From: Macrostomum lignano
Taxonomy: Eukaryota
NCBI GenBank assembly: GCA_002269645.1
Contig: NIVC01000494.1
Location: 434,001-498,000 of the forward strand
DNA length: 64,000 nucleotides
Reading direction: 5' to 3'
Position numbers and translations under genes: made by a program. This document shows, one piece after another, positions 692 to 62,422 of this stretch (position 1 is its first letter; the number at the start of each line of letters is the position of its first letter). The notes under the pieces were generated by a model. The model was not told the DNA's origin. It did no database searches and was given only the letters and a program-made list of their open reading frames with translations.

Positions 692-3600
692 ATGGCAACC
701 AGAATTAAAATGTGCGAGCGTTTTGGCGAAATCCTTATTATTATCTTTTGCGTTGCAAGCATTCTAAGGTGAGTCTGTTGCTGAAATGTCAAAGTAGGAT
801 TTGCGGTCAGTTACAATGATTTAAGAAGACTTACACTAAATTACGTATTTCAGTGCCTATGCTGGCAGTCATTATTGCTACAACTCTCGAACGGACGAAA
901 TTGACATTGCCAAACGCCATCAAAAGGACGAGACACTGACTGCGGAACTGGAACCATCCAGTACTGCTAGAGTGTCGCCCCGGACACCTGCAAACTGTCA
1001 ATGGGAGATTTCCTGCTTTGGACTGAGGCAAAATGCGCCAATGCAGATGGCACTGATTGCAGGCAGGTACAACAGCAACATCGCGATGCACTATCAGATG
1101 GGTGAACATCAGTACGACGTTTCTAACGGTCTGATGCATGGAATCACCCTGTTTGATGAGTGAGTACTGACGCTTGGAGTCTTGGGTTATCATGGTGTGA
1201 GACCAGCTAGCATCTAATTAGCACTCTGAGACATTGTGAGACCAGCTAGCATCTAATTAGCACTCTGAGACAGTGTGAGACCAGCTAGCATCTAATTAGC
1301 ACTCTGAGACAGTGTGAGACCAGCTAGCATCTAATTAGCACTCTGAGACAGTGTGAGACCAGCTAGCATCTAATTAGCACTCTGAGACAGTGTGAGACCA
1401 GCTAGCATCTAATTAGCACTCTGAGACAGTGTGAGACCAGCTAGCATCTAATTAGCACTCTGAGACAGTGTGAGACCAGCTAGCATCTAATTAGCACTCT
1501 GAGACAGTGTGAGACCAGCTAGCATCTAATTAGCACTCTGAGACAGTGTGAGACCAGCTAGCATCTAATTAGCACTCTGAGGCAGTGTGAGACCAGCTAG
1601 CATCTAATTAGCACTCTGAGACAGTGTGAGACCAGCTAGCATCTAATTAGCACTCTGAGACAGTGTGAGACCAGCTTATACATTGTTGTTTTTGTATGCT
1701 ACGAGCGTATTTACAAAAATTTATATATTAAAACAAATATATATTAAAACAAAAATTTTTATATTACTCACTCGAACCGACCCAATCAACCTGCAGCAGC
1801 TGCATCATCAAGGTGTCGGCCTCCATGAGCTCCAAGCATCCTCCGGAGCCGCCCAGTCTAAGAGTGGTGCTGCTTCAATCCAATATCTGTGCCAGGGACT
1901 TTCTCTATTTTCAAGGCGGCTGCTACACAGCCAGTGGAATCCGTCAGAGCTTCAAGGACTTCTCCAGCAGCATCCTGGGCTCTGCTCAGCTGGCCAGCTT
2001 CTCCAGCAAGGCTGAGATCAGCAGCTTCATCGAAGCGAGTGAGTCTAGAAAACGAATTTGAGGATGAAGGAGATAACAGATATTAGACAGTAGATTTTAG
2101 GTACAAAGGAGATCAATTTATGTAGAGGGTAGACATGGAGGGTAGTGGAGTAGACATGGAGGATAGTGGAGGAGACATGGAGGATAGTGGGGTAGACATG
2201 GAGGATAGTGGATTAGACATGGAGGATAGTGGATTAGACATGGAGGATAGTGGAGTAGACATGGAGGATAGTGGATTAGACATGGAGGATAGTGGAGTAG
2301 ACATGGAGGATAGTGGAGTAGACATGGAGGATAGTGGAGTAGACATGGAGGATAATGGAATAGACATGGATGATTAAAGCGGAGGGAAGCTGAGGATGAT
2401 GAAACAGAAAATGATGAGAAAAGAAATAGGATAAAAGAGCCATGAAGAGAGACTTGACAAGACTTCAGAGTTCTTTGCTGAACTTTTCAGACATGGCCAT
2501 CGTGCCGATCCGTCGGCGGCCTCTCAGCTTCACCCAACCTGTCCGCATCGGTCTGTTTTACCGTACAGCCGATGCTGTCGTCCTGTCGCTGGCCTCAAAC
2601 TCCACCAGCTGCTGGCTACAGCCCACGCCTCAGTTTAAACTGTTTCGGTGAGCGTCCTGTGTGTACTGTCTGCACTCCGCCAATCAGCTCTCTCCTGACT
2701 GTGTGACCCGCTCTCTCCTGACTGTGTGACCCGCTCTCTCCTGACTGTGTGACCCGCTCTCTCCTGACTGTGTGACCCGCTCTCTCCTGACTGTGTGACC
2801 CGCTCTCTGCTGACTGTGTGACCCGCTCTCTCCTGACTGTGTGACCCACTCTCTCCTGACTGTGTGACCCGCTCTCTCCTGACTGTGTGACCCGCTCTCT
2901 CCTGACTGTGTGACCCTCTCTCTCCTGACTGTGTGACCCGCTCTCTCCTGACTGTATGACCCGCTCTCTCCTGCCTGTCCTGACCCGCTCTCTCCTGTCT
3001 GCGTGACCCGCTCTCTCCTGCCTGTCCTGACCCGCTCTCTCCTGTCTGCGTGACCCGCTCTCTCCTGTCTTTGTGACCCTCTCTCTCCTGGCTGTCTACA
3101 TATAATCCACTCTCTCCTGCCTGTGTGACCCGCTCTCTCCTGTCTGTGTGACACGCTTTCTCCTGTCTGTGTGACCCGCTCTCTCCTGTCTGTGTGACCC
3201 TCTCTCTCCTGTCTGTGTGACCCTCTCTCTCCTGTCTGTGTGACCCTCTCTCTCCTGTCTGTGTGACCCTCTCTCTCCTGGCTGTCTACATATAATCCAC
3301 TCTCTCCTGTCTTTGTGACCCTCTCTCTCCTGTCTGTGTGACCCTCTCTCTCCTGTCTGTGTGACCCTCTCTCTCCTGTCTGTGTGACCCTCTCTCTCCT
3401 GTCTGCGTGACCCTCTCTCTCCTGTCTTTGTGACCCTCTCTCTCCTGTCTGTGTGACCCTCTCTCTCCTGTCTGTGTGACCCTCTCTCTCCTGGCTGTCT
3501 AGATATAATCCACTCTCTCCTGCCTGTCCTGACCCGCTCTCTCCTGCTTGTCTACATGTAATCTACTGTCTCTGCCTCTCTGTACAAATGTGTACCAACC

Positions 3601-4071
3601 ATCTCTGGAATCTAGATTTTCTATACTCACCCTTTACACAATTCTTTGTTCTTTGTCAGGGTGGCCAAAGGATCAAAAGGCTTGCTCTGCGGATCTCTAA
3701 AGCAGCTCGACTCGAATTCATCGAACTTCAGCATCGAATTCGTAGCTTGCTCCACTCTGCTTCGGTCTCTGGTCAGCTTCCCAGTGAGTGGCAGATCGCA
3801 CAGTCGCTTAGCTTTGTCTTGCGACTTTCTTCGGCTTGAACGTCAACATTCAGTAGCTGACACGCAGCCTCAGGACCCGATGGAGTCCAAGTTGAAAGCG
3901 CAGACGCCGTTGTCAATGACATTGTGTATCGTCTTCATTGTTTGTAGCGTTGCGGTGTTCTGCAGTGTGATCTACGGGGTGTACCGGTACAGATGTTACA
4001 AGCGATACCGTCGATTTAATGGACAGAGAAACTTTGAAGTCGTTGCTGACATTAAAAAATCATTGAAGTGA
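692..4071 (+). CDS. Gene B1: type I membrane protein, CUB-like + C-type-lectin-like ectodomain, about 397 aa (most divergent family-B member)
   Basis: Manual splice model: exons 692-768, 854-1159, 1797-2038, 2491-2647, 3660-4071. All introns are GT-AG with consistent phases (1194 nt, open). N-terminal hydrophobic stretch (EILIIIFCVASIL), GSHYC..C.WEI, C..FLYFQGGCY..AQLASFSS, PLSFTQPVRIGL, CGSL..IEFVACS, TM (LCIVFIVCSVAVFCSVIYGVY), short basic tail. Confidence 0.8.
1195..1676. repeat. 39-bp minisatellite (gtgtgagaccagctagcatctaattagcactctgagaca), about 12 copies, in B1 intron 2
   Basis: Near-perfect tandem copies with no spacers. The same unit occurs at 5411-5698 and 57465-57909. Confidence 0.97.
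2129..2374. repeat. 21-bp minisatellite (gtagacatggaggatagtgga), about 12 copies, in B1 intron 3
   Basis: Visible tandem period. It produces the spurious MEDSGVD and SMSTPLS ORFs. Confidence 0.95.
2688..3550. repeat. 23-bp minisatellite (ctctctcctgactgtgtgacccg and variants) in B1 intron 4
   Basis: Tandem period 23, drifting from ctgact/cccg to ctgtct/ccct variants along the array. Confidence 0.95.
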
Positions 4072-4988: not shown

Positions 4989-11431
<6,443 letters not shown>

Positions 11432-12441: not shown

Positions 12442-13134
12442 ATGGCTTTTATTTTGTTGTTGATTTTTGTCCACTGCCTGATATCTTGGTGAGCAATGGA
12501 TTTTATATTTTATAATTAGTAGATCTAAGAGGTTCCCCACAGGGGTTTTCCAGTCAAATTTCATGTCTAATCCAGTCGGATTTGAAATCGCTAGTCTAGT
12601 TCTAATCTAGTCTTAGTCTAGTTCTAATCTAGTCTTAGTCTAGTTATAATCTAGTCTTATTCTAGTCTAATCTAGTCAAGTATAGTCTACAGACTGGGGC
12701 TTTAGCACCAAGGGCGCCAGCTATTGAACCTTTTATTACGATTCGCTACTACTGTTTCCAGTCAACATAGTATGCAAGCAATTAACAACCAACCCTAACC
12801 TTTCGCAGTGCTGAGGCCGGTCATTACTACTGCGGCAAATACGGCATGGCTGTCAACATGACTGAACAGTCTGGGCCCGTTGACTACCTCATCCTCCCGT
12901 GGGAAGAGGGCCAAAAGAATTTACCCAAGAAACTCAGCTGCAAATGGAAGTTCAGTGGTAGATTCAGTAGGAATGTAATCCTGCTCCTGAAGGGATTCGA
13001 CACTGAAAACGTGGACCTGAGTCTCCGACGAGTGGTGCGATCGGCTAAGCATTCTAGTCTGACAGCTGGAAGAATTCGGTACAGGTTCCTGCCTTATGAA
13101 TGTGAGTCATGCAAGTTATAGCTTATCAACGTGG

Positions 13135-13170
<36 letters not shown>

Positions 13171-13173
13171 GGC

Positions 13174-13210
<37 letters not shown>

Positions 13211-13213
13211 GGC

Positions 13214-13281
<68 letters not shown>

Positions 13282-13299
13282 TGACAGACAGACAGACAC

Positions 13300-13350
<51 letters not shown>

Positions 13351-13351
13351 C

Positions 13352-13390
<39 letters not shown>

Positions 13391-15353
13391 CTCGGGTGCA
13401 CTAACACTCAAAAAGTACCACAACATAGACAACTGAAGTGCATGTTCATGGATGAATGCCTAAGTACGAGGTACTAAACTCAACCCACGTAGATACATTT
13501 TGCGCTGCAATTTCTTGAAGTAAATATTTTTCATTAACGAAATATTTTTTAATCAAGGAAAATAAATGCACACTATGTAATAAAGCGTAAGCTAGGCGAA
13601 AATTCCGTACTGCATGCTCGTCTATGCATTATGAGTTGGACATCCAATATCCAATATTTTGTAGCTTCTCTGACTGCACACAACTTTCATGGCATCGTCC
13701 AGTTTTAGTAGCAAAAGCTGACAAAAGCTAAAGAAGACAACTTTAGGACTCGCGTATGACTAATGACTCGCAAACAAATTTCCAACAGTAAACCTCCCAT
13801 TTCAAACTTAAATGCAGCAACAATTCAATGCTTTCAGACTTTGTCAACGGCAGCTGCTCAGCTCAAGCTGCTCGAGGCTGGCAATCCGTGGAACTGAAGA
13901 CACTTCGCGTTCTACAGTTGCCAAGAAGGTGAAAAATGAATCTGCTTTGGTTTTTACATTTTGCTTTTCCGTTCCTGATTGAACTGCCTATAGCTATTTT
14001 TATCATATCTACTTGAAAGGTTTAATTGCACCTGCAGTAGCGGATTTGGGGGGGGGGGGCAAGAGCATGTGCATGCAGCTCATGATAGTACGTACTATTC
14101 TTAACGTTTTCAAAATTTGCGAAGGTTAGGCCGTACTTTTACTTTTTCAATTCCACTCCTTAGAAGCAATTTACATGTCGAGTTCGACACGGGCTCCAGC
14201 GGGAATCCTCACGACACACCTGGTCTGCGAATCCAGCTGATGGAGCCGGGATTCTGCAGCTCAGACGTTGTCTGTTTTGAGCACAGCTGCTACTCAATCT
14301 CATCGGCTCGGAGGTCGCTGAAAGCAGAGCTGACTGCAATCTGCAGCGATGGAGGACTCGCACAGCTGGCCAGCTTTAACAGCTCCAGCGCTCTGCAGAA
14401 CTTTGTGGCTCAAAGTAAGCTGCCATAGCTACAAGTGACTGAAGATTGCATGGTTGCGCAATTTGACTCAAACTCTGTCGATGACTTTTGCAGGCCAGCG
14501 GACCATTGTTGGAACCGGTCTGAAAGCCCGCAGCAAAACTCCGCTGAATCTCACACAGCCAGTTCGCATCGGGCTTCTGCACGATCGACTGACTGGCTCC
14601 ATTTTCTACCTGAGCAACTCAAATGGCGAACTGGAGCTGAAGCCGCTGGTCGAGTCGAAAATTCTGTGAGCATTTTCTCTTTGGTCTTGCTCTCCATCAG
14701 CTGCCAATCATAAATTGCTCGTATTTCTTAACTGCAGCTACTACAATGTTTGGCCTACGAGTTCGAGATTCTCATGCGGCTCCCTGAAACTTGCTCAGAC
14801 AGCCGATGGCACCGAGGTGTCCTTCGGAGTCGTCGAGTTTGTCAGCTGCAGCGAGTCGCTGCCGGCGCTGCTCAGCTTTCGAGACACCGCCAGAAACTGC
14901 TGCTGCGGCTGCAGCGCCAGAGCTGTGCTCAGCCAGATTGAAAAAGCAGAATCTCACGTATTTGTCTATAAGACTTCCACTGAATCGTCTAATACGACAC
15001 CTATTCCAAAACCTCGGTTGGAAACCGTATCGAAAATCAGTAGGTCTGATGCTGCTGCTCCGAAATCGGATTCCACTGACATTCCCCAAAAATTTTCGCA
15101 AGAAACTGAGACGAATAAAGTTGATTATGATTCATACGTAATTCCATTTTTCGCCGTGCTTGCGTACTCGATTTTGTTAAGTATAGGCATGATCATTGGC
15201 GCTTATTACTTTTGGTACAGGATTCGCTCGCCTCCACCGGGCACATTGACCCGTATTTATTACACGGAAAGCACGCTGGGGCCAAGCAGGACTTCAAGTT
15301 TAGCCCGCAACCCTGCTGATATTTTATTGGACCCCAGCAACCATTGCAGTTAG
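12442..15353 (+). CDS. Gene B2: CUB-like + C-type-lectin-like type I membrane protein, about 489 aa
   Basis: Exons 12442-12488, 12809-13101, 13838-13928, 14164-14414, 14494-14665, 14738-15353 (1470 nt, open, GT-AG). Signal peptide MAFILLLIFVHCLISC. CUB-like C..SG..C.WKF..ILLLKGFD..SNLHVEFDT..GLRIQL. CTLD-like C..FEHSCY..C..LAQLASFNS..RIGL..CGSL..C. TM FFAVLAYSILLSIGMIIGAYYFW. Confidence 0.85.
13135..13390. repeat. (CAGA)n microsatellite in B2 intron 2
   Basis: Tetranucleotide run. It gives the TDRQ and SVCL pseudo-ORFs. Confidence 0.99.
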
Positions 15354-21340: not shown

Positions 21341-22390
21341 ACCTATTAGACCAGGGGTCGGCAACCTTTTCTGGGCAAGGGCCAAATAGCCAAATTTTCA
21401 AGGGCTCAGGGCCAATAACATAAAAAAGTGAAAACCACATTGCATCCACGGACTATTTAATTGCCATTTAATTAGTTTAACTGCTTAAGTAGTCCGGTAG
21501 TAGTTCAGACTGCATCATTTCAGTCTGAACAAACAATTTTTTTATTGATGATTATCAAAACCTCAATTTCACCCCAACCATTGAAGTCCCCCAGCCCAAA
21601 ACCTGCCCTATTCCTTCAATTCTTAATCAAACTCCAATAACCACCCCTTTCTGGAAAAATTCAGCCCATCTGCCCCCACAGAAGGCCAACACAAAGATAA
21701 GGGGTGAGAAAGGTGAGATAGAGAGGGGAAGAAAGAGAAAGTGGACGCATACATGCGCAACCCCCCCCCCCCTAGATTTACACCGCCTGTGCGACTTACT
21801 TTTGACCAAAAATGCGACTTACCTATGAAAGAAAACCTAAACAAAAACAAACTTGATTTCGGGTATACGGCAGAAGTAATGATAACCGTATTATAAAGGC
21901 TAAATGCCTCGGCATCTAGTTAGTACCATCTGTATTTTCCGGTGGGGGCCCCTCACCAGCCGGCCGGATCGGCCGGATGTTGCGCATGTACATGTATCAG
22001 GTAGAGTGAAGGTTAGGGGGCCGGATACAATGCTAGATCAACTTTTTCATCAACAGCAACAAACAACAACAACAGCAGCATCAACAGCTAGTGTTCTGTT
22101 GGCTCGTGGACGAGATGACTAACAATGTACACTTTAATTGTTTTCATAACTTGCATGTGGAAAAGTCAGGCAAATTTACGATGGAAACGAGAAATTCAAA
22201 ATTTGTAGAGAATTGTACAGTTTGTAGAGAACGATTGCATACTCGTATATTTTCTAACTAAATCTGAGTTACCCTTATTTTCCAGAAAAGACCGGACTAA
22301 TCAAGTATAATCATAAAGAAGGCTTTCTTTGCCTTTGCTAGTTCAATCAGCAAGCAACTGCCAAGAGCTGTCATTCCCAAAAGCGCTGAA

Positions 22391-22434
22391 ATGCTCAGCC
22401 TCTGGTTACTGTGGACATGCAGCATCCTGCTTGG
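22391..22434 (+). other. Extra copy of the B3/B4 signal-peptide exon (MLSLWLLWTCSILLG|gtaagc): orphan or alternative first exon
   Basis: 44-nt exon with intact ATG and donor, plus about 250 bp upstream, matching 24860-24903 and 34503-34546. Confidence 0.75.
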
Positions 22435-22530
22435 GTAAGCAAATAACCTTTTAACAATTGTTTACCGCAACAAATATGCAACAAACAAAAAAAGACATCA
22501 AGCGCATTTGAAGATACAACTGCTGGTATG

Positions 22531-40289: not shown

Positions 40290-40366
<77 letters not shown>

Positions 40367-43300: not shown

Positions 43301-45467
43301 CAATAAAATGATGCACTACTCGTATTAAGGAAGTCCAGTGCTTTCTCTTTCAAAAAAGCCTGTTTGCAGATTTTAAAGTGAACTGTAGCTAGTGGCTATT
43401 GCTAGATATCGAGTGCACACACTGCATAATCTATGTAAATAATAAACGCCGTTTAATTCACATTCTGTGGTTAGAATGTCCGAGGCTGCGTTTAATGGTC
43501 TCGAGGCTACGCTAGTGCTACGCTCGCCTCGAGACCATTAAACGCAGCCTCGGACATTCTAACCATAGACTATGATGAATTAAACGGCGTTTATCATATA
43601 TTAAATTCGATTGCTTCTGATTTCGAGGAGATTATATGATATAATATCCTAGTTTTTGTTAAAAATTACCACAGACAACACATTCCCGGCTCAGAATAGT
43701 ACAATTTTTTTACGATTAAATAAGCAATCGTATTTTATATAGAGAGCATTAAGAAAAATGCACTTTGAAACTGCTTTTTTCGACCCTAGATTTGTCCAAG
43801 CCAAGTATAAAATGCTCCCTTCTCGGCTAGAAAGGCTTTGCACAGCGGCGCATTAAGATTCTAGCTATAGTCTATGGCCAGCCCAGCTGACCGTGTCGGC
43901 AGGAACGGAGCTTTTGTATTTCTAGCTCCGGCGCGAAAAGGGACTGCAATTATCCAATAAATTAGCTACTGAAACGCACCTCAAATTTTGATTTCAGAAA
44001 CAATAACTTTAAATTATTTTCCTCTTTCAGTCGTTTCTAAAGGAACCTGTCCTGGTAGAGCTAATCGAGACTGGCGCTCTGTGGACCTGGACACGGTTCG
44101 AGTTTTTCAGATTTCAAAACGGTAGGTTCTTCCGCCTCTAACCGGTAGTTCAGCTAAATTTTAATTTTAGTTGAACGTTGTTCTACACTTCAGGGCTGAT
44201 TTGATTGTCCAGTTTACCGCTAACTCGAGCGGGAATCCCCACGACACACCAAGTCTGCAAATCCAGCTGATGGAGCCGGGATTCTGCAGCAAGGACGTTG
44301 TATACTTTGAGCACAGCTGCTACTCAATCTCATCGGCTCGGAGGTCACTGAAAGCAGAGCTGACAGCAATCTGCAGAGATGCAGGACTCGCACAGTTGGC
44401 CTCTTTTAACAGCTCCAGCGCTCTGCAGAACTTTGTGGAAAAAAGTAAGCTGCCATGGTTATAAGTGGCTGAGGATTGCATGATTACGCAATTTGACTCA
44501 AACTCTGTGGATGACTTTTGCAGGCCAGCGGACCCGTGTTGGAACCGGTATGAAAGCCCGCAGCAAAACTCCGCTGAATCTCACACAGCCAGTTCGCATC
44601 GGGCTTCTGCACGATCGACTGAATGACTCCATTTTCTACCTGAGTAATTCAAAGGGCGAGCTGGAGCTGAAGCCGCTTGTCGATTCCAGTAATCTGTGAG
44701 TATTTTCTCTATAGTCTTGTTCTCCATCAGGTGCCAGTCATAAATTGCTCGTATTTCTTAACTTCAGCTACTACAATGTCCGACCTACGAGTTCGAGATT
44801 CACGTGCGGCTGCCTCAGACTTGCTCAGACAGCCGATGGCACCGAGGTGTCCTTCGGAGTCGTCGAGTTTGTCAGCTGCAGCGAGTCGCTGCCGGCGCTG
44901 CTCAGCTTTCGAGACACCGCCAGAAACTGCTGCTGCGGCTGCAGCGCCAGAGCTGTGCTCAGCCAGATTGAAAGTGCGGAATCTCAAGCTACACCTAGTG
45001 AGATGCCACCCAGTTCAGCAGCTAGTGTGACTCCAAGTGGGACATCCAGTACAAAGACTACTGCACCGCATCGATCTGAAACTAGCAAGGCTGAGAAAGT
45101 CACACCGCCATCTGACTCTACCGATGCTTGTCGAAAGTCAACTGATGTTTGTAAGAGGGAGAGCTACAATTTCTTTATTCCGTTTGTAATTGTGCTCATC
45201 CTGCTTGTACTGGTGATCATAGTTTTTGTTGGTTATTGTATGTGCCATAATCGTGCGTCAAAACGCACTGATAAGAATGAAGTCAAATCAGATCAGATCA
45301 CCGAAGGATGGAGCGTCGACACATCCTCTACACCCCAATCTTCAGTACAGAACAGCAGAATCGCCAGTCGGAATTCATTGCATATTTGGAACAACAGTTT
45401 TGACCATAATGACTTGCAGAAACATTATTCATCGTGCAGCTATGCAGCTTTATCCACGAATGAATAA
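34503..45467 (+). CDS. Gene B4: CUB-like + CTLD-like type I membrane protein, about 521 aa, with two TE-expanded introns
   Basis: Exons 34503-34546, 39192-39499, 44031-44121, 44194-44444, 44524-44695, 44768-45467 (1566 nt, open, GT-AG). Exon sizes 44/308/91/251/172 are identical to B3. TM FFIPFVIVLILLVLVIIVFVGYCMC. Confidence 0.82.
35027..36833 (-). mobile_element. 5'-truncated RTE-group non-LTR retrotransposon (intact RT domain), copy 1
   Basis: ORF 35070-36779 has EQNGFR, FIDFKKAFDSV, SGVLQGDTLAPFLF, LGYADDL, FVYLG. (TTG)-type 3' tail. gtaaagttaac at 35016-35026 and 36845-36855 is the likely TSD. No endonuclease region present. Confidence 0.93.
37598..39140 (+). mobile_element. 5'-truncated RTE-group non-LTR retrotransposon, copy 2 (inverted relative to copy 1)
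   Basis: ORF 37661-39094 is almost identical to copy 1. 11-bp TSD tataaaatatc at 37587-37597 and 39141-39151. The empty site is visible in the B3 intron near 25300. Confidence 0.95.
40250..40362. repeat. (GA)n microsatellite
   Basis: Dinucleotide run. Confidence 0.98.
40573..40842. repeat. 25-bp minisatellite (aatatattcctcgagtgcagaaacc), about 11 copies
   Basis: Unit starts at 40573, 40598, 40623 and onward. Confidence 0.95.
40867..41968. mobile_element. About 1.1-kb non-autonomous element with 65-bp terminal inverted repeats
   Basis: 40867-40931 is the reverse complement of 41904-41968 with few mismatches. No transposase ORF inside. Confidence 0.7.
42900..43127. mobile_element. Foldback MITE: perfect 83-bp inverted arms, TA ends
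   Basis: 42900-42982 is the reverse complement of 43045-43127, with a 62-bp loop. Confidence 0.85.
43442..43594. mobile_element. Palindromic MITE (about 153 bp)
   Basis: ataaacgccgtttaattca..tggttagaatgtccgaggctgcgtttaatggtctcgaggc is mirrored by its reverse complement around a short loop. Confidence 0.8.
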
Positions 45468-49047: not shown

Positions 49048-52000
49048 ATGCTCCGTGAATTACTCGGCGCAACAATAAAGTTGCTCGCTATGCTATTGCT
49101 TGGCTACTACATTGAAAGGTAAGAATATGTGAAGCAAATGAATACTTAATTACTATACATGTAGATGCTTTTAGCCAACAGGGCCAAAAGCAGCAAGAGG
49201 GAAGGCACAGGCGTGGCGACAAAGGCAGCGGACGAAACGAGTCCTGCGATAGCGAATATATTTTATGATTTGAGGCGATTAAAAGGGAAGTCACGAAGCA
49301 ACGGAATAAAAGCATTATAAGAAAATTAATAAATAAAACATTTACGAGCCAAAGCGCTCTCGCAGCGCGCACGAGAGAGCGTGAGCGCACAAATAAAAGG
49401 GGGCCGACGCCGCCCACCCCCAACCCAACACCCCCGCCTGCCGGCCGGCACCCAGCACCCCACCTTGCGGCAGGGATGCACACGCGCGGGCCGCACGCAC
49501 AGACGGGCGGAGGGGGCGGCCCCGTCGGCTAAACACGATTACAGAGTCGGTTAAAACCGGCCCCTGAAATCGCAACCATATTATCGTACAGCATTGAATT
49601 TTTGGTTTTCTTGCAGAGCTCATGCTGGAGACTACTTCTGCTTTCCACACGGCACTCGACTGATTGACATCAGCAGCAGTACCAGCATCGGATTTTCGGA
49701 CAATCGGGTCGTCCCGAAAACGGACCAAGCCATCCAAGAGCTCAATAAGAATCTGAGTTGTCATTGGATTTTTCATTTCAACCTCAACCGAGATGAGTTA
49801 ATCCTTGTTCTGAGTGGATTCAACGTAGGCAAAGCGGAGTTCTATCGCCAAAGACTGGGCCGATCCGCAGAGTTGACAGGCGTACAGCCTCCGAGAATGC
49901 GGTACCGTCTTGATGCACCAGCTGAAAGTAGTGAGTATTGGAGGGGAACAAATTAACTTAATTAGCTACGAGTACTACGGAATGCAGCACGAAGTGGACT
50001 AGAGTTGGAACCGCTGGAAGAGACGTTGCTAGATGGTACATGTATGTCTAATTGGCTTAGGCATACATATTGGCTTAGACTATGAGTCGTAGATCAACTA
50101 TTCAGACAAGTGCATACGAGCGTACGGCTCATAATAGACTGCAGAAACGATTTTGCCCAATGCCGTTATAGCTTAACAGTAGAACAATATACGGAACTCC
50201 CTGACATTTTCTTGCTGCACCGGAACGGAGCAATGCAGGCACACAAAAGAAATTCAATAACACGGACTAACCCGGTGCACCTTCTCAAACAAGAATCAAG
50301 TCGCCAGCCCCCCGGACTGTCGAGATATTCGACGGTTTTGCCAGAAGTTCGGATTTTTCCGAAATTTTTCCAATAAGTGCTGGTGTATTCAATGCATCCC
50401 TGTGCGTCAGTCAATACTGCGCCTCACTGCAGCCTTGCCAAGCCTCCTAATTTCATCAGCACATTGACTACAAGGGTCTGCATCGGCTCTGACTTTTACT
50501 CGAGGCAGATTTGTTTTCATTGTTCTTTCAATGTCCCTCCATAAACCATTTGTAAGACATCTAGAGAAGCAAAAATACGAATTGAGGCTTATTAGGAATA
50601 TCGATTTTTTCATAATTAAATCTTTGCAAACAAACCTACATGTCATAGATTTCATTTTTCTAGAAACAGAATGTCCCCACTGTGCACTAGTCGTCCGATT
50701 ATATGCCATCCAACTGACTTTTAGCATGATTATTAAAAAATCAAAATGCACGTTCATGTGTCCACTGGTCCTCATACTCGTATTGCAGAATGTTCTTTGA
50801 ACGAAAGTCGAGGTTGGAAGACGGTTGATGAGACAACTCTGGAAATTGTGCAAATTTCAAGCAGGTAAATTTTTTTATTTTGACTGTTAACAATATATTT
50901 CTGAAATCGGGAAGAAATCCGAAAGATAAAAACTGTCAATATTTTTGTTAAAACGGTTTGGTAAAAGGTTATAAAAGTAAATCAAATCAGATAAAATTAG
51001 AATTCGGTACAATACATGCCTCCTGGCTCACAGATTGCTCAGCGCAAGTGGGTTTAAATCATTACATAATGCCTTGATAGGGCAATCGAAGTAGTCGAAG
51101 AACATCAAGACCGAACATTTTGGAAATCATGTATTTAGTACAGGGGTTTGGCAAACGTTTTACCTCAAGGGCTAGATATGAAATGGGGCTCAGAGAGGAG
51201 AGAAGTGAGAGAGATGAGAAAAAGATGAGAGGGAGATTAGAAATAATGGAGTTGATAAGAGACACAAACCTTAGGCGAGCCGGATTGCTATTGTGAAGTT
51301 TCAAATGACCCGAGGGCCGGATAGAGAGGCTTTACGGGCCGGACTTTGCCGAACTCCTTATTTCGTATAAACATGCACCGCATTTAACTAATGGTGTGAA
51401 TTTTGGTTCTCAATCAATCTGAGAAATCTGTTAAGCTTATAAACACATGCAGATATGATGTCTTCATAGCAATAATATTTGTAGATCAGTGTGCTAAAAC
51501 TATTAGAACTAGAACGTAGGGATCGTCTCCTAGTATAGGCTAAGGTCGCATTCTCAGCCCAGATACACATCGAAATTTCAGAAGCAAACTGTCCATTGAG
51601 TTCGATCAAGCGACAGGCAGTCAACATGATTTACAAGGGCTCAGAATCCAGCTAATGGAACCACAGACCTGCGGCAGAGATGTGGTATACTTCGATGGCA
51701 ACTGTTACATGATTGCACCGGTTCGCAGGTCTCTGATTGACCAACTGGCTGTTATCAATCGAGAAAGCAGAGTCGCGCAGCTTGCCAGTTTCAATAGCTC
51801 CATCACTATGCGGCAATTCTTGGCTCAAAGTGAGATTTTTTAGTGTGTTTTTATTGAAAATCTTTTAAGAATGGCTATAGACAGTGGGTATAGATAAGGA
51901 GAATTTGTTCGGACTTGATAGATTCTCGATTCACTGTGAATAAAATGAGTCAATTTCTCAATGTGAAAAGTGTGTCCATAGTTATACAGTTATACCTGTA

Positions 52001-53390
52001 CATGTTGCAGTGCTGGGCCTCGGAGACAGACTTGCCATACACTACTTAGAAGGAAAAAAGCAAACTTGGATACCCCTAAATGGCCTCGTCTTTTTTACAA
52101 AGGCCTCTTTTATTGAATAGCTCAGTAATTCCAAGCTTCTTCTTCTACAGACTTAAAGGCTCTTATTTCTAGGAAAACGACGATTAAATAGAGAATTTCA
52201 AACAAATAATTCTGTAACTTGATTTCTACACACGATTTTTAATAAACTAAGTAGAAGTTTAACGGGATTGACTTTATTGTCTATGGCCGAGTACAGTTCT
52301 ATGGCACAGTGGCTGCTGCTGCAGCGAATCAAGATTCTCGACTTGATCATTGATTTATAAAAATATTCAGCTCTTTTTTCAACAATGAATTGAGTTTTAC
52401 TCAAGTTTAAGCATCTTTTCTTTAAGCAGAGTTTGAAACGATCTTTTTAAGCAAATAATCACTTTACGAGACTCAGATTGGTAGTCAATAACATTTCTTG
52501 TTTATCGAAATTTTCAGGCCAACGCGACCGCATCGGATCCGGCTTCGACGTGCACAGCAAAGTCCCGATGAACCTTAAGCAACCAGCTCGAATCGGGTTG
52601 TTTTACGATGGCGGAAACAAATCCATATATTATCTGGGACGAAGTTCGAGCGATCTGTGCGAGATGAATCTGCTCACTGACGCCCACAAGCTGTAAGCCA
52701 ACGGAACGAATCGTTGTACAGGTGTTGCAAAGATATCGGCTTACCTGATCCAAAATTTATTCTTTAATCTTTTGTAGATTTTACACGGTGGAATCAGCAG
52801 ACAATCGAGTATTCTGTGGATCCCTGAGAACTGCTGCAGCGGTAGGATTAATCGAATTCAGAAATTGCAGCGAGTCGCTTCCTGCGCTAATCAGTTTTCC
52901 AGACGATGGCGGCAAGACCAGCTGTTTCAACTGCAGCTCTACCTTGTTGAACTCTATTCGAGCTCTAGATCTGAGTCCGACCGATGTCCCTGACCAGAAT
53001 AAAAGCCTGAAACCAAATGGTGCGGTGGATAAAAATATGTTGATAGCAATTGCTATTGCAATACTGGCTTTTCTATTCGTGGCTGTTTCAGTGATAGTTT
53101 TATGCAAGCTTTGGGCAAAAAGAAGAACTGAAGAGCCGCGATATGGAGACAATTCGCCAGATCAAGGTTTGCCGTTGAATGTTCAGCCCGACAGCATGAG
53201 AACAGCTGACGGGGATGACTGTTATGCTCGAGGAGAATCTGAAATATACGATGTGATACAATATCTGTCAGCTGACAAAATTGCACAAAGTACCTATAGA
53301 GCTGAGCATGAACTGACCGGAAATGACAGCGCTAACAGAACTACGAGCTTTACCGACGGTTATTGCACGTACGAGAATGATTCGGCTTAA
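49048..53390 (+). CDS. Gene B5: CUB-like + CTLD-like type I membrane protein, about 498 aa, Tyr-rich tail
   Basis: Exons 49048-49118, 49617-49930, 50789-50864, 51582-51829, 52518-52692, 52778-53390 (1497 nt, open, same phases as B2). AGDYFC..SCHWIF..LVLSGF; GLRIQLMEP..YFDGNCY..AQLASFNSS; QPARIGL; FCGSL..IEFRNCSESLPALISF; TM MLIAIAIAILAFLFVAVSVIVLC. Confidence 0.85.
51141..51359. mobile_element. Degenerate hAT/Charlie-like MITE in B5 intron 3
   Basis: Imperfect TIRs caggggtttggcaaac and ctttgccgaactcct. The internal ggccggatagagaggct motif recurs near 60395. Confidence 0.45.

Positions 53391-54643: not shown

Positions 54644-54735
<92 letters not shown>
54230..54735. repeat. GA-rich low-complexity tract (54230-54530) and (GA)n (54648-54735)
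   Basis: Purine-only stretches. Confidence 0.9.
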
Positions 54736-54739
<4 letters not shown>

Positions 54740-55382
54740 GGATTTGAATTTTCTTGCAACTCTGAGAAAGCATTTACCCCCATTGTCGGGAGGTAGGGAG
54801 GCATGGAACCTGTGAGAAATGGATTCCTCGAAGATTTTTCCGAGCACAATAGAAATTATTTGCACATAGCATACATAGCAGGGAACAATTCAGTCCCTTA
54901 TTCTGTTCCGTTTACTGAGGGGCAAGGGTGCAAACTCTTTGAAAGCATTAACAATAATGCTTTCAACCCCAAATCTATACTCTTGGGGTCCCCAACCGAC
55001 TGTCTACGGGATGACGCAATTTGCCCTCAAACCTTACCTTACTTTAGCTTCTCTTGGCCAGCCATTAACTGAGACATCGTTTCCACCAATTGCTAATGCA
55101 ATGTTTTTCTGGGAGTCAATGGCGAACTGAATGTGACGGACGACCGTATTATTATGAATAGATCAGCAACATTTATATTAGCTGATCTCAGAAATCTAGG
55201 GATATCAGCAATTCCTGTAAAATAGAATATACAGTTGAGTAAGCGGTAAGGTGACGGTAAACACAAAAGTTATGCGCCTTGCACAGTCAGCTATTTATTC
55301 TAAAATGGGGCTAAGCTGTTTTTAGTCCTATTGGTGACCCGACTTCACTGCACTCTATATTTATGACCCAGCTGCTTTTTAG

Positions 55383-56317
55383 AACGAATCCGTCTGAGTT
55401 GGTCACATCGGCCTTCGAACCTTTCAAAGCATCAAACGCATCACGAAAATGAACCGCTATTAAACGAAGACGGATCAGAGCACAGGGGCACCATGCCAGT
55501 CACTGATTTAAATGATCATGACCCCTCAGCTGACATGGAGGTTGCCATTGTTGACACAGAAGTTCATGCGAAAAGCATGTCCATTCAATCGCAGCATAGT
55601 AAAAATTCCCTCGAAACGACAGTAAAGAGTGAAGCAAACGTTTCGGAAAATTTAAGTGCTAAAGAGCCAATCAGAAAAGAAGACAACACCGAAAATGACA
55701 GAGGAACGCAAACAGTCAATGTAGGAAAATATATCCAAGAGAACAATGCACTAAAAAGAGAAACTGAAAAGAACAAGGAACCTAGCAACAATTTTAAAAC
55801 TATTGAAATTGATGAGAGTCTTGTGCCAGTTCAAAACAATCAAAGCAAATGCACCCTCGTGAGCCGCGAGTCACAGACAGAGACAAGAGGCCTAGCCATG
55901 GCTTCATCAAGTTTCAAATGTGGCCTACCATCATATAGCGAAAATAGCCATATTAGCTCTTCGGGTTTTAACAACCATCTGTCCGGAAGAACCAACAACT
56001 CTTCGGGTTGCAGCAGTGGTTTATACGGAAGAACCAACAACTCTTCGGGTTACAGCAGTGGTTTATACGGAAGAACCAACAACTCTTCGGGTTGCAGCAG
56101 TGGTTTATACGGAAGAACCAACAACTCTTCGGGTTGCAGCAGTGGTTTATACGGAGGAGGCAACCACTCTTCGGGTTACAGCAGTGGTTTATACGGAGGA
56201 GGCAACCACTCTTCGGGTTACAGCAGTGGTTTATACGGAGGAGGCAACCACTCTCAGGGTTTCAGGGATTTACCCTTTCAATGCGCGCCTCAAAACTGTC
56301 AAGAAACTTCTTTTTGA
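55383..56317 (+). other. Unassigned long open exon/ORF (disordered, with a 42-bp coding-type repeat)
   Basis: Open from acceptor tttttag (55382) to TGA at 56317. E/K/N/S-rich, RGTQT and RESQT motifs, about 6 copies of SSG(C/Y)SSGLYG(RTNN/GGNH). No upstream partner exons established. Confidence 0.4.
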
Positions 56318-57041: not shown

Positions 57042-60000
57042 ATGAGGTTGATTGTATGGCATCTGATTCTTACCCTGCTGTTTGGTTCGAGGGTCAGTGG
57101 AAACTGCTCCGATAAGTTAAGGACAGGTAAGCAAGGGTGAAATCGTTTTTAAACGTTGTGCTGGCTTTAGAATAAGATACTGTTGATTTCCACATTTCAG
57201 TGACAGTGCAGCTGAGCAGGGCTGACGTTCTGCGCACCTGGCAACCCAGCGGTGCGCACTGCCGTTGGTGGGAGAGTCGGCAGTCAGAGACAAACCGATT
57301 CCCTGCTGCTGTGCGGTCCGGGCCTCGGTGGCTTGTGATGCAGCTGAGGCAGCCGATGATGCTGGAGGCGGTGAGCGTGCGAGACTGGGGTGAGTGACGC
57401 TGACCGACTCATTCTCATGATGCATGATGAGGCAGAGGGAGTCTGGGACACACAGTGTGAGACAGTGTGAGACCAGCTAGCATCTAATTAGCACTCTGAG
57501 ACAGTGTGAGACCAGCTAGCATCTAATTGGCACTCTGAGACAGTGTGAGACCAGCTAGCATCTAATTGGCACTCTGAGACAGTGTGAGACCAGCTAGCAT
57601 CTAATTAGCACTCTGAGACAGTGTGAGACCAGCTAGCATCTAATTAGCACTCTGAGACAGTGTGAGACCAGCTAGCATCTAATTAGCACTCTGAGACAGT
57701 GTGAGACCAGCTAGCATCTAATTAGCACTCTGAGACAGTGTGAGACCAGCTAGCATCTAATTAGCACTCTGAGACAGTGTGAGACCAGCTAGCATCTAAT
57801 TAGCACTCTGAGACAGTGTGAGACCAGCTAGCATCTAATTAGCACTCTGAGACAGTATGAGACCAGCTAGCATCTAATTAGCACTCTGAGACAGTGTGAG
57901 ACCAGCTAGTAGCCAAGCACTCGTGTTGCAGATGGCCAGTGGCACGCAGCAGCTCCGGTCGGCTCGCCCGTGTCAGCGGTCGGAGCCTCGAGCCTCCCGC
58001 TGGAGCTGCAGCTGGAGGATCCGTGCCGTGCCAGCTGGGAGGCCTTTGGCAGCAGCGACCACTGGAAACCGTTCGGAGGCGATGCCGATGCCCCACTACA
58101 GGCTCCCGTCTCTTTCATCCGACTGAGCAGTGAAATTTCATTAAGTTGGCAGGCATTGAACATATCAGGTGAACATGTGAATATGTGCTCCTCTATCACA
58201 AAGAAGCTATAGATTAAGTTATCGTTTTTGTAGCTGTCTCAAATGTAACTCTGATTTAGGTCACCCATCGCCAATGGCACTGAACATGTCTCTGCACAGT
58301 GGCTACATGTACCGCAGCTACGGTTTAACCGTCAAGCAGCATTTTCATTTGAACATTGAATACTTTGTGAACTACTGCGGCACCGAGAAGATTGCGTGCT
58401 GGCTGCGAAAAGATGAGCAGACTAAATTGAGAGCAAATCATGTGAGTTCTATTTTTAATAGACGCTGGACAGAGGCTCACGGATAAAACAAGGAAAATAT
58501 CATTCATAATCGTATCATTTCTAGCTGAGCTCGGTTCGGAACTCAAACGGCATGACGACGCACAAGTTTGAGCTGAAATTTCGCAAAGGCGATCACGGCA
58601 AACTGCTTCAATGCGGCTTGCAAGCGCAGCAGGAAATTGTTCTTCTGGAGGAGCCGCTGTACTGGGAAGGTGAGTCTTGAAGCCAACTTGGAAGTAGAGT
58701 TGTTGGCCTGTGAGCACTGTCTGTTGGGTATTCTATTCTTGCTCCGCAGTTCCTACACAGACACTGAGCATAATCGAATCGACAGCTTTGGTTCTGGGAT
58801 ACCCGGCTGAAATCTGGGTCTCATCGAAATCGTTTCCGGAGGCCCAGCATCACTGCTTCATCAGCACTTCGCAGAATCAACGGGTGTCTCTAAAGCTCGA
58901 AAAGACGGTGAATTTTCAGACTGTTATCTGTTGTCAAAATCACTTTTAGTATTATCTCCTGCGGTTGAGCAGTCCCACCTGGTTAGAAACAGGTATTATC
59001 TCCTTCGGTTGGGGTAGTCCCACCTGGTTAGAAACAGGTTTCATCTCCTGCGGTAGGGGTAGTCCCACCTGGTTAGACACAGGTATCATCTCCTGCGGTA
59101 GGGGTAGTCCCACTTGGTTAGACACAGGTATCATCTCCTGCGGTAGGGGTAGTCCCACTTGGTTAGACACAGGTATCATCTCCTGCGGTAGGGGTAGTCC
59201 CACCTGGTTGGACACAGGTATCATCTCCTGCGGTAGGGGTAGTCCCACCTGGTTGGACACAGGTATCATGGCGGGCACTTGCAGTAGGGATGTCCCAGAT
59301 GGTTAAGACAGACATAGTCTTAAGCTAAGTTAAGAAAAGGACTCTCAATCAAGGTAAGGATAAGAATTGTCAGCTCAACATTTTTTTCAATCCTCCAGAG
59401 ACTGTCGAAGGCTGTGGACGAAAAAAACCGAACGGTCTTCCGGGTTCAATCAAAGTTTGCCTTTAATGTTACCCAGTCCGTACTCAAACGAGACATTTTT
59501 TGCGAGTGCTCAGCAGTGTCCGGAGTGAGAAGTCTTGCGCCAGCACGGAATAAGATATCAGAAATTAGTAGTGAGTCAGATCAATTCATTATGAGTGTTC
59601 ATGCGGAAAATCAAATAAACCGATTCAACCGATTTCCAGAGCCCTGTCAGACTACCGTGGACCTTGGTTCGAAACGATACTGGCTGTCTGGCGAAACCAG
59701 GTTAATTACAGTGACCTCCACCCTCTGCAGCATTTGGAATGTTACTCACAGCTGTTACCTGGTGACAACGGACAAAATTTCTTCAAATGTTGCACTTCAA
59801 AAAGTTCAGGTACGGTCCCCTATGTATAGTAGTATAGCGACCTCTGAATCACATGTCAATTACCTCGAGAACATCGAGTTCAGTGCATTCAATTAAATAA
59901 TACTAATCCCCACAGCAAGACAAATTCAGTAGCGCACACGAGCTCCGTGTGACCGAATCAATGACGTCTCGGAACCGGTGGAAGATTCGATGCCAAGTCA

Positions 60001-62422
60001 ATCAGACTGGAGTGATTTATGAAGACTCCGATAGTAGCCAGGGAAACGCGGTGCCAAATGTTTTTTGTGAGTCTGTCGTACTCATACGGGGCAGTTATAG
60101 GCTGTCGACATAGCCACCAAAGAGGTGATTTAAGGCCTTATACTATGCTTTCACTGTACAAGGATGTACGTATCAATGCAGTCACCTGTGACTAGACCTG
60201 AGAAGTCCAAACTGATTGATTAGTAATGAGTACTGCTCATCGCACCAAGCCAAAAGTCAGTATTTCATAAACCCACATTAACTTTAGTTACCGTGGCTCA
60301 AGAAAGAAGAGAGAAGGGAGACGCAGGAGAGAAGAGAGCTGAGAAAAGACAAACTTCGAGCGGGTGGGATTGCTCTTGTGAAGTTCCTCCCAACGGCCGG
60401 ATAGAGAGGCTTCGCGGGCCGGAGAAAAAGACAAAGATCAATCAGAAGGGCTAGAGCATATGTATTTTTTACATTAATTTGTTGCTTTAACTGTTGCTTA
60501 TTAAACTTTCCACGAATTATTTTTAGCGCCAGAAGACAAAGCCGCTGTTGATTTGTCAGCCAAGCAGCTCACCAATAAGCACGTCTCAGTGCACGCAATC
60601 TTGACTAACAGAAACGACCGTCTGCCGATTGAGAATCTGACCTGCCAGTTGTTGGCTTTCACTAAGCTGAAATCTGCTCCGATGAGGGTAAGGAGAATTC
60701 ATTTATTGGAATTGCTGATCTAGAATAGAGAAACCAAGTTCAGCAGATTATCCTAGAATTACGTAAAAGGTACAGTGGGCAGTAAGGCATGTAGGGTTAG
60801 AGAGTTGCTTATAACATTGCAGTTGGTTTGTTTTATAATTCTGAATTTCACCTTTTCTCTGATCTGATCTGCGGCTCTCTGTATGCATTTAGAGACGCGA
60901 TAAAGGTCACCAGGCGCGTCACCTGACATTGCGTAATATAATTTTTCAGCAATATATTCCAATGCATCACGACGACCAAAACATCTGGAGCTCAGTTGTT
61001 GCTGTGCCAATCATTTCTCAGGCAACCAGAATCGCAATTCACTGCTTGGCATTGCAAATTTACTTTGGCGAGACAGTATTTCAGTCAGTGTCTCAGGCTG
61101 ATGTGGCTTTATTGCAAACTAATATTCCAAAAACCGACGCAAATGCACTTCAAGCATTTGCTCAGACAGAAGTTCCGATACAGTCGAAGTGGAACCCAGA
61201 TACTGACAAGTCAAACTCGATGCTTTAATAGTGATCGCTGCGGCTGTTCAGTTGGTCATTCTGGTTTTTGTTGTCTTGGCAACATGGCGAATTGCGAAAG
61301 TAAGTTTAACAAAATTGTATTTTGAAAGATTTAGGCAGCATATGAATGAATGAATACAAATCTGTGTTTCAAAGCATGCACATTTTGATGGCCAATTGCC
61401 AGATCACATGCACAAAATGATTTGGGAAACTTTCGGCTTGACGAAGTCGAAAGATTTTCAAAGTAACGAGTATAATAATTGATACACCTGCCTTAATGGC
61501 AGATGTGCAACCGACAGCTCAGCCGCAGCTATTGCGCAGCGCATCTGAAGGCTGCGTACGGCTGTTCAGTCCAAGGACTGGGGGGTCGCCACACACAGCC
61601 TCAATTACCCCAGCTAATGCTGGCACCAATTTTACAGCTGGGTGAACTGAAGCAATGCAGAGATCGTTAAATGTCTTGCTTAAAGACACAAATTGTTTCA
61701 GTGGGATCAGGAATCGAACCCAGTCGTGAGTCAGACGCTCTAACCACTAGGCTACGACCTAGTATAGTGTAGCTACAAAGTATATCTAGATAAACACTAT
61801 GGGACGGGTCTCCCACAGACAGATTTGAAGTCACTACCATAACTGCCGGTACGCAGTGGCCCTGACGTAGTTTGAAAATAACGATTCACACCTACTCGTA
61901 TGAGAGCCAATTCCTCCTAAAGTACAGAGTATTTAGGCCTGACGACTATAGAAAGTAGTGCAGAAGTCTGCAGCATCGCCTCAGTGCAGCTGGTTGTGAG
62001 ACGATGCCACTGAAAGCGTTGTTGTTCTCCTCCAATTGTTATTGCGATTGGCCAATTAGCTCGTAAAAACAAACTTGCAGATTCGAAATCGACGTCGCGC
62101 TGTCGCGGAAGACGAAATCAGCAGACCCAACGGCGGCAGCGATGCAGTTGAGCTGACCGTCACCAACAGTGCAGAGTCTGGGGGTGCGACGGCAACAGCT
62201 GCGCCGTACGATTATCCCAGCAGCGATTGGAGCACCTTCGAGCAGCAGGATTCTGCAGGAACTGCGGGGCCAATCTATGAGCAGGTGTCTATAGACTCCG
62301 GTGCCAACAACAGACCGCCACGGCAGAATCTGCCGCTACCGCCGCCGCCGCCGCCGCCGCCGCCTGAGCAGCAGCAGCAATCTGACGAGTCTCCCTACAT
62401 AAACTGGCAAGGGAGAGGATAA
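57042..62422 (+). CDS. Gene A2: paralog of A1 (discoidin-like + 4 Ig-like + TM + Tyr/Pro tail), about 780 aa if a 1-nt frame break near 61225 is repaired
   Basis: Exons 57042-57126, 57201-57389, 57932-58168, 58260-58441, 58525-58669, 58750-58907, 59399-59570, 59640-59809, 59916-60066, 60527-60687, 60950-61299, 62081-62422 (2342 nt, one short of a multiple of 3). Signal MRLIVWHLILTLLFGSRVSG. Phases match A1 except that A2 lacks A1's juxtamembrane intron. Confidence 0.78.
57465..57909. repeat. 39-bp minisatellite, about 11 copies, in A2 intron 2
   Basis: Same unit as 1195-1676 and 5411-5698. Confidence 0.97.
58955..59268. repeat. 45-bp minisatellite, about 7 copies, in A2 intron 6
   Basis: Unit gtagtcccacctggttagacacaggtatcatctcctgcggtaggg. 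15-aa periodic pseudo-ORFs. Confidence 0.94.
61478..61758 (-). mobile_element. tRNA-derived SINE in the last A2 intron
   Basis: Minus strand: A box TAGCCTAGTGG, B box GGTTCGATTCC, then tgtgtctttaagcaagacatttaac..tgcttcagttcacccagctgtaaattgg, resembling CORE/Deu-type SINE central domains. Confidence 0.75.

Follow-up and report, generated by a model that had tools for sequence, protein, structure and literature searches.

Gene content of the cluster

The window, a stretch of 64,000 nucleotides from the genome of the flatworm Macrostomum lignano (positions 434,001 to 498,000 of contig NIVC01000494.1, forward strand), was found to contain a cluster of seven genes for single-pass receptors of two families, here named A and B. 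Translated open frames were compared all against all, exons were built by hand from the DNA, and the models were spliced by a script. Two exon families were recovered, all on the + strand and in the order B1-A1-B2-B3-B4-B5-A2. An earlier note on this DNA had proposed seven same-strand spliced genes in this order as a candidate immune or allorecognition locus, and every gene was recovered where it had been placed, with the first ATG of the cluster at 692 and the last stop at 62422 as its outer bounds. The chief new point of the analysis is a cassette of the A family that demonstrates exon-plus-intron homogenization among paralogs. The genes are as follows, in window coordinates (TM, transmembrane segment; CTLD, C-type-lectin-like domain; Ig, immunoglobulin).

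692-4071, + strand: B1; 5 exons (692-768, 854-1159, 1797-2038, 2491-2647, 3660-4071), 397 amino acids; signal peptide, N-terminal beta-rich domain, CTLD-like domain, TM and short basic tail, from hydropathy and exon homology to B2-B5
4989-11431, + strand: A1; 13 exons, 744 amino acids; signal peptide, constant N-module (residues 31-~170), four Ig-like domains (~190-600), TM (616-636) and 108-residue tail
12442-15353, + strand: B2; 6 exons, 489 amino acids
24860-27247, + strand: B3; 6 exons, 493 amino acids as a conceptual translation
34503-45467, + strand: B4; 6 exons, 521 amino acids; identical to P0003 (Mlig033487g1)
49048-53390, + strand: B5; 6 exons, 498 amino acids; identical to P0005 (Mlig022098g1)
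57042-62422, + strand: A2; the 13-exon plan of A1 with exons 11 and 12 fused; frame breaks before the TM

The introns of the spliced models are of the GT/AG type and about 65-1100 nt long. Intron phases, computed from exon lengths, are constant within each family as the earlier note had described, being 1,1,1,0,1,0,1,0,1,0,(1),0 in A and 2,1,2,1,2 in B. By hydropathy, the N-terminus of every cluster protein is hydrophobic, and a single strongly hydrophobic segment lies close to the C-terminus, in agreement with the proposed architecture of a signal peptide and a single TM. A charged residue for pairing with an adaptor was absent: Lys, Arg, Asp, and Glu are all missing from the most hydrophobic 19-residue TM windows of the seven genes. 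Among the B copies, B5 has diverged most, and the N-terminal domain of B1 has no equivalent of B2 exon 3. Outside the cassette, A1 and A2 share ~45% amino-acid identity.

The hand-built models of B4 and B5 match their NCBI proteins letter for letter, and the NCBI Mlig annotation was built from RNA-seq transcriptome assemblies (PMC5730564). A1 differs at 12 of 744 residues (~98% identity) from its homeolog Mlig007224g1 (P0006), the protein of a sister copy, and B2 is 95% identical over 100% of its length to the annotated sister-copy protein Mlig017891g1. The cluster of seven single-pass receptor genes is confirmed as real. The introns, the minisatellites, and the exact match of the window to contig NIVC01000494.1 of M. 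lignano assembly GCA_002269645.1 (Mlig_3_7) rule out a prokaryotic or viral source; as had been surmised, the DNA is from a lophotrochozoan.

A homogenized cassette in the A family

The cassette consists of one exon, the following intron, and the beginning of the next exon. Its two copies in the window are listed below, together with a third occurrence of the minisatellite that it contains.

5147-5839, + strand: A1 cassette; exon 2 (5147-5335), all of intron 2, in which a 39-bp minisatellite lies at 5404-5701, and ~118 nt from the start of exon 3
57201-58049, + strand: A2 cassette; the same three parts as in A1, with the minisatellite of intron 2 at 57458-57909
1195-1676, + strand: 39-bp minisatellite in B1 intron 2; 12.4 units by Tandem Repeats Finder (TRF), of the same unit as in A intron 2

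Exon 2 (189 nt, 63 codons) is 100% identical between A1 and A2, with nonsynonymous (dN) and synonymous (dS) divergence both at zero. The dS rises to 0.39 in exon 3 and 0.62 in exon 9, and ranges from 1.1 to saturation in the remaining exons, where amino-acid identity is 26-54%. Ten A copies on four contigs were compared over exon 2, the adjoining 5' part of intron 2, and the opening 118 nt of exon 3, and their nucleotide identity was 92-100%, with a mean of 96%; six further A genes lie within 80 kb on contig L003. The 5' edge of the cassette is sharp: the likeness sets in with the very first base of exon 2, and only the acceptor consensus is in common before that point. The likeness then spans the whole of intron 2 and stops ~118 nt into exon 3, after '...CCAGCTGGGAG'.

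The residual differences in exon 2 have a pN/pS of 1.02 and resemble fresh neutral mutations, and the identity is therefore not explained by selection on the protein. The cassette exons also have the highest GC content (0.65-0.70) and third-position GC content (0.75) of the gene, a pattern expected from GC-biased conversion. In the distant paralog P0054, and less clearly in P0055, the N-module is present in diverged form at the same N-terminal place, indicating that the module is old rather than newly inserted. As judged from these sequence comparisons, recurrent gene conversion, or concerted evolution, is what keeps the cassette alike across the A paralogs.

The 39-bp minisatellite was found in intron 2 of all ten A copies, in 2-29 units; not even the three A1 subgenome copies have the same number. 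In the ~250 kb examined, the repeat occurred only in A intron 2 and in B1 intron 2. The B1 occurrence is repeated at 4631-5530 of contig L002, and is thus present in two subgenome copies of B1, where its flanks are not shared with the A genes. The membrane-distal part that the cassette encodes is the least variable part of the A proteins, with 1-3 amino-acid differences among subgenome copies. The earlier note had described loops, stalks, and tails as strongly diverged; this applies to the Ig exons of A and not to the distal module.

The conserved 5' part of A intron 2 (5336-5410 and 57390-57464) includes a UGAUGA C-box-like motif and an imperfect palindrome. A structured RNA or small nucleolar RNA was considered for it and rejected, as no Rfam family reached its gathering score and the best match (E=0.067) was at chance level; a tRNA scan found no tRNAs. 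On contig L003, the annotated P0015 gene (10001-87216) spans 77 kb across six A cassettes, and the mapping of its transcript was probably misled by the identical copies of exons 2 and 3.

Domains of the A-family proteins

An AlphaFold2 (AF2) model of the A1 homeolog was run on an alignment of 17 paralogs. Residues ~190-600 were modeled confidently as four beta-sandwich units, with a predicted local distance difference test (pLDDT) score of 80-90 over ~290-600. A Foldseek search with this model returned 524 PDB matches at E<=1e-3, the top ones of which were all multi-Ig ectodomains. The best match was SYG-2 D1-D4 (3e-13, 12% sequence identity), and others included KIT, ICAM-5, contactin-2, LILRB3/PirB, CD22, nectin-1, and SIRP-gamma. 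Each Ig-like domain spans two exons with phases 1-0-1. No Pfam family matched A1, A2, or their homeologs, and the distant paralogs P0060, P0050, and P0059 reached C2-set_2 or C2-set_3 at about the cut-off; many A members are named 'Ig-like domain-containing' in UniProt. The A ectodomain is read as containing four C2-like Ig domains, and the label 'Ig-like', originally assigned from the letters of the DNA, is upheld by fold.

The constant N-module comprises the first ~140 mature residues, encoded by exons 2 and 3. By eye, its pattern 'G-x-x-W-L-[LV]-x-x-L ... V-x-V' recalls galactose-binding-like domains, a conjectural likeness. UniProt labels on fragments of the module (F5/8 type C, Bgal_small_N, DUF2531, and others) were scattered and were given no weight.

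The A1 tail carries the motifs PYDVP, VYERA, and a C-terminal YINW, and the 120-residue A2 tail carries PYDYP, IYEQV, and YINW. Across A paralogs, the tails have in common [PA]-Y-D-[VY]-P, Y-E-D-P-D-x-Y, and a C-terminal [FY]-[IV]-[NK]-[WY]. A regular-expression scan of the seven tails of A and B found no immunoreceptor tyrosine-based inhibitory (ITIM), activation (ITAM), or switch (ITSM) motif; the sole match was a C-terminal YxN in A1, A2, and B5. A distant relative beyond the cluster, P0062 (Mlig014562g1), has two Pfam-confirmed CUB domains along with Ig domains resembling those of A, a TM, and a tyrosine-bearing tail, and thus represents a CUB-plus-Ig architecture in M. lignano.

Domains of the B-family proteins

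From the N-terminus, the B proteins have an unassigned beta-rich domain, a putative and degenerate C-type-lectin-like domain, a stalk rich in Ser, Thr, and Pro, a TM, and a variable tail, which in B5 is 96 residues long with seven tyrosines and a C-terminal YEN. No Pfam family, including Lectin_C, matched the B proteins or their homeologs, and Foldseek with a B model of mean pLDDT 50 returned nothing at E<=1e-3. When the middle domain was searched as a profile, all 23 of its PDB matches at E<=10 were C-type lectin-like domains, led by CD69 (3.3e-4) and including DC-SIGN, DC-SIGNR, NKG2A, and CD72. The sugar- and calcium-binding motifs EPN, QPD, and WND are absent from the ectodomains of B1-B5, and 'RIGL' replaces WIGL in four of the five proteins. 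The name 'lectin-like' given to these genes in the earlier note is supported only over the first ~50 residues of the domain.

The N-terminal domain had also been likened to CUB domains. This identity was rejected, since no Pfam CUB was found at E<=1, a profile of the domain had no PDB match, and an hhalign comparison with the two CUB domains of P0062 yielded a probability of 0.2. The sole support for CUB was the UniProt name 'CUB domain-containing protein', and the domain is accordingly treated as beta-rich but unassigned.

Subgenome copies and selection

Genes B1-A1-B2-B3 recur in the same order on contigs NIVC01001089 (L002) and NIVC01000416 (L004), with a dS of about 0.02-0.10. Three subgenomes have been reported for the neopolyploid M. 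lignano (PMC10733133), and the three syntenic copies of the cluster fit this number. In the B2 homeolog on L004, an intron holds a retroelement of the long terminal repeat (LTR) type (12487-14907; RVT_1, RNase H, an 806-residue open reading frame), which stretches the gene to 14.8 kb.

Selection was assessed from Nei-Gojobori dN/dS, calculated pairwise for the three subgenome copies, which are ~98% identical. Overall values ranged from 0.31 to 0.9: A1 had 0.37-0.43 (0.31-0.39 in the Ig domains), B2 had 0.67, and B3 had 0.57. No ectodomain region exceeded 1 between subgenome copies, and the lone dN/dS above 1, in the B2/B3 stalk (1.11), derived from 25 versus 7 changes. Selection on these genes is relaxed purifying rather than detectably diversifying, and the notion of selection-diversified ectodomains found no support in these values.

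Exchange and decay within the cluster

The dS between B2 and B3 is 0.88 in the N-terminal domain and 0.09 in the lectin-like domain and tail, and the N-terminal domain of B3 is 88-91% identical to its B4 counterpart. B3 is therefore a crossover or conversion mosaic, in which the 5' half resembles B4 and the 3' half resembles B2. Its exon-2 acceptor (25350-25351) reads AA in the window, compared with AG in B4 and in the B3 copies of L002 and L004; at the next AG, the frame is shifted and a stop follows after 16 codons. In A2, one base is missing from an AAA run (61213-61215), such that the assembled frame stops before the TM; adding one A restores an open frame through the TM and the 120-residue tail. 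The break is either a real lesion or a homopolymer assembly error. A solitary first exon of the B type was also identified:

22219-22502, + strand: orphan B exon 1 including its upstream region; ATG at 22393, donor at 22434/22435; 88% nucleotide identity to the B4 exon-1 region

No downstream exons accompany this exon (22393-22434), which is either all that is left of a former B gene or a first exon in alternative use. Together with the A cassette, the mosaic B3, its altered acceptor, the A2 frame break, and the orphan exon bear out the unequal crossover, conversion, and gene decay that had been read from the cluster at the outset.

Several other elements are interspersed among the genes. The most conspicuous lies within B4 intron 1 (34547-39191):

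35024-36567, - strand, and 37597-39139, + strand: inverted pair of reverse-transcriptase open reading frames; 99.7% identical, ~1 kb apart; Pfam RVT_1 at 1e-28

This pair is a passenger outside the receptor system, and is either a palindromic retroelement insertion or an artefact of long-read assembly. Between B5 and A2, an open frame of 316 residues (55367-56314, + strand), which lacks an NCBI annotation, ends in 14-residue repeats rich in Ser, Gly, and Tyr. Another of 201 residues (22823-23425, + strand) lies in a GC-rich stretch, has a coiled-coil-like composition, and is possibly part of a degraded element. No Pfam match was obtained for these or other intergenic open frames. Mini- and microsatellites are numerous in the window, and minisatellites of 20-45 bp occur in most long introns of the cluster. 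A1 intron 12 (10018-11055) holds (TATC)x259, and a 23-bp unit is repeated 154 times (3.5 kb) between B3 and B4 (30250-33801).

Distribution of the two families

A HMMER search with an A-family profile against 1.84 billion representative proteins returned 38 matches at E<=1e-3. Among the ten weakest, which were named, seven were from M. lignano and three were vertebrate VCAM-1 proteins of frog and ray (E 4e-9 to 1e-4); the VCAM-1 matches represent generic Ig similarity. The remaining matches that could be placed were from M. lignano. A word-based search with B2 found five proteins, all from M. lignano. These searches agree with the earlier observation that none of the genes matches a conserved named gene, and neither family includes a one-to-one ortholog of a conserved adhesion or neural gene. 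The A paralogs number in the dozens, and the constant module is present in 33 database proteins. A word-based search with the A module alone returned 8 fragments and was unfit for copy counting.

A B gene lies directly upstream of an A gene at several loci, where gene predictors fuse the two (P0007, P0010, P0013, P0021, and P0054); B-like parts also occur within fused predictions. This adjacency of B and A recurs, and a functional pairing is a possibility that the gene order raises. A search by gene ID of a full-text library of papers and of supplements to M. lignano papers found no mention of the cluster genes or their expression. Neither family had been described, and all known members are from M. 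lignano.

Comparison with known receptor systems

The closest parallel to the A family is found in the primate Siglec-5/Siglec-14 and Siglec-11/Siglec-16 pairs. These are adjacent Ig-type single-pass receptors in which conversion keeps the distal ligand-binding part alike, whereas they differ in TM, tail, and the remaining ectodomain. Siglec-5/Siglec-14 and the A genes thus share a homogenized distal part and a diverged remainder. However, the homogenized part of A is a module without an assigned fold rather than a V-set Ig domain, it is common to dozens of paralogs on several contigs rather than to a pair, and its conversion tract includes a minisatellite-bearing intron. The A genes also lack the split between ITIM tails and charged TMs that distinguishes paired Siglecs.

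The leukocyte receptor complex (LRC), with KIR, LILR, and the chicken CHIR genes (PMC1458963), resembles the cluster in its tandem multi-Ig single-pass receptors and in birth-and-death evolution, unequal crossover, and conversion. LILRB3 and PirB are also among the fold matches of A. In contrast to the LRC receptors, the A proteins have no sequence homology to them, no ITIM or ITAM, a dN/dS below 1, and a distal part that is constant rather than variable. In Hydractinia, the Alr genes (Alr1, Alr2, and Alr-like) have a hypervariable N-terminal domain with homophilic, allele-specific binding. They resemble A as a large lineage-specific invertebrate cluster of Ig-like single-pass receptors with tyrosine motifs in the tails, whereas the N-terminal module of A is invariant (92-100% nucleotide identity among paralogs) and M. 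lignano is not colonial. Among adhesion molecules of the Ig superfamily, SYG-2/nephrin provided in SYG-2 D1-D4 the best fold match for the four-Ig stalk, but identity was 12%, profile searches gave no orthology, and both the domain number and the N-terminal module differ.

For the B family, the CTLD receptors of the natural killer complex (NKC) and their relatives (CD69, NKG2A, CD72), together with DC-SIGN, were the only known structures matched by the middle-domain profile. CTLDs of the natural killer type, like the B domain, are missing the calcium and sugar motifs. However, these receptors are type II with a C-terminal CTLD, whereas B is type I with an additional N-terminal domain and a match over the first ~50 residues only. 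Most clec products of C. elegans are secreted. The C. elegans genes that combine CUB and CTLD are, like B, a lineage-specific, expanded, and clustered family of a lectin-like and a second beta domain (PMC8051790), but the N-terminal domain of B failed the CUB tests.

Interpretation and alternatives

Taken as a whole, a Macrostomum-only tandem cluster of two receptor families, in which the A cassette is homogenized by conversion, is the reading that we regard as probable. The window would be one of three subgenome copies, and A and B would be type I cell-surface receptors. As the sequence comparisons show, the families expand and contract by tandem duplication, by unequal crossover (the mosaic B3 and the orphan exon 1), and by decay (the B3 acceptor and the A2 frame break). 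Gene conversion holds the ~0.7-0.9 kb A cassette nearly identical in all paralogs, the rest being saturated at synonymous sites. The fast-mutating 39-bp minisatellite may act as a recombination hot spot, and conversion tracts may end where homology ends, at the exon-2 acceptor and inside exon 3. Since all A receptors carry the same head, the same binding partner would be expected for them. The paralogs would then differ in Ig stalk and signaling tail, providing one ligand with many readouts or cell types. Signaling may proceed by phosphotyrosine docking, with YxN as a Grb2-type site; the consensus at the end of the A tails is Y-[IV]-N-[WY].

Several observations weigh against parts of this reading. 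The sharp edges of the cassette are also compatible with a transferred cassette, and the role of the minisatellite as a hot spot is suggested by its position only. The presumed head itself has a pLDDT of ~30 and no Pfam match, and its profile, even with the diverged versions included, has no PDB match; the low AF2 confidence is probably due to the invariance of the alignment there. AF2 modeled B poorly (mean pLDDT 50), and the alignment of the B middle-domain profile with CTLDs spans only residues 5-57 of 164. Pairwise dN/dS could miss positive selection at a few sites. A2, for which there is no transcript-based NCBI annotation, may be dead.

The role put forward in the earlier note, an innate immune or allorecognition complex of variable lectin-like and Ig-like receptors for non-self, diversified by selection, appears unlikely, although several features would suit it. 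Both families are lineage-restricted, tandemly expanded, and mosaic, with ectodomain folds common among immune receptors, tyrosine motifs in the tails, and dN/dS values (0.4-0.9) that are high for ordinary genes; homogenized ligand-binding heads also occur in vertebrate paired immune receptors. What speaks against it is that dN/dS stays below 1 in every ectodomain region between subgenome copies, that the tails lack ITIM, ITAM, and ITSM and the lectin-like domain lacks a sugar-binding motif, and that the distal head is invariant rather than hypervariable. Moreover, M. lignano is a solitary worm, with no obvious use for allorecognition between tissues. A role in adhesion or reproduction has a similar probability to the immune one, and is likewise doubtful. 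Here the genes would be ordinary recognition molecules, serving neural wiring, epithelial junctions, or the interaction of sperm, egg, or mating partners, that were duplicated in a repeat-rich and recently polyploid genome. The fold match to the nephrin homolog SYG-2, with contactin, nectin, and ICAMs also matched, points in this direction, as does the encoding of each Ig domain by two exons with phases 1-0-1, which is how Ig domains are split in NCAM-type adhesion genes. Purifying to relaxed selection between the subgenome copies is also consistent with this role, and reproduction-related genes are fast-evolving in Macrostomum (PMC7336406). Conserved adhesion genes would, however, have shown orthologs in other animals, where the A-profile search at E<=1e-3 recovered none apart from the weak VCAM-1 matches, and the dozens of paralogs also speak against ordinary adhesion genes.

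Two further explanations concern the cassette itself. A recent spread of the cassette into older Ig genes, through exon shuffling or within a mobile element that carries an acceptor, two exon parts, and a minisatellite, is highly improbable. In its favor, the identical tract has a sharp boundary on either side, the 5' one lying at a splice acceptor, and the same minisatellite occurs in an intron of the unrelated gene B1. However, the cassette occupies the same position and phase in all copies, the diverged N-module of P0054, and less clearly of P0055, marks the module as old, the aligned edges show no terminal repeats or target duplications, and B1 has only the repeat units, not the flanks, in common with A. 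An assembly artefact, with the identical segments arising from collapsed or mis-joined repeats in a long-read polyploid assembly, is the least credible of all. The M. lignano assembly is redundant (PMC5730564), and the inverted 99.7% reverse-transcriptase pair in B4 intron 1 and the A2 frame break in a homopolymer could be read in this way. Each cassette, however, has its own unit number, private substitutions, and unique flanks on both sides, and the annotated transcripts P0006 and P0015 contain the module. The module is also present in proteins that have only UniRef A0A1I8-type accessions, apart from the NCBI BOX15 entries, and such M. lignano entries are presumably predictions on an independent earlier assembly.

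Implications

Homogenization of the A cassette by gene conversion, as favored here, provides a clean natural case of exon-plus-intron homogenization over many dispersed paralogs beside a hypervariable minisatellite, and is relevant to what directs gene conversion to a site and what limits its tracts. It also has consequences for annotation, since the identical cassette misleads transcript mapping and gene predictors, as in the B-A fusions P0007, P0013, and P0021.

A bolder proposal, which we consider speculative and rather unlikely as a whole, is that the A family represents 'one head, many bodies'. Across different chromosomes, dozens of anciently diverged genes would have a ligand-binding head that is actively kept identical through conversion events starting from an intronic minisatellite, making the family a flatworm counterpart of vertebrate paired immune receptors with an independent origin. 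If so, one ligand, possibly microbial, partner-derived, or supplied by neighboring B receptors, would feed many Ig stalks and tails. Almost no surface recognition receptors have been described in flatworms, and as M. lignano is transgenic and tractable to RNA interference, these genes are directly testable. Should the head bind one ligand, the A family would show a single recognition event wired to many outputs.

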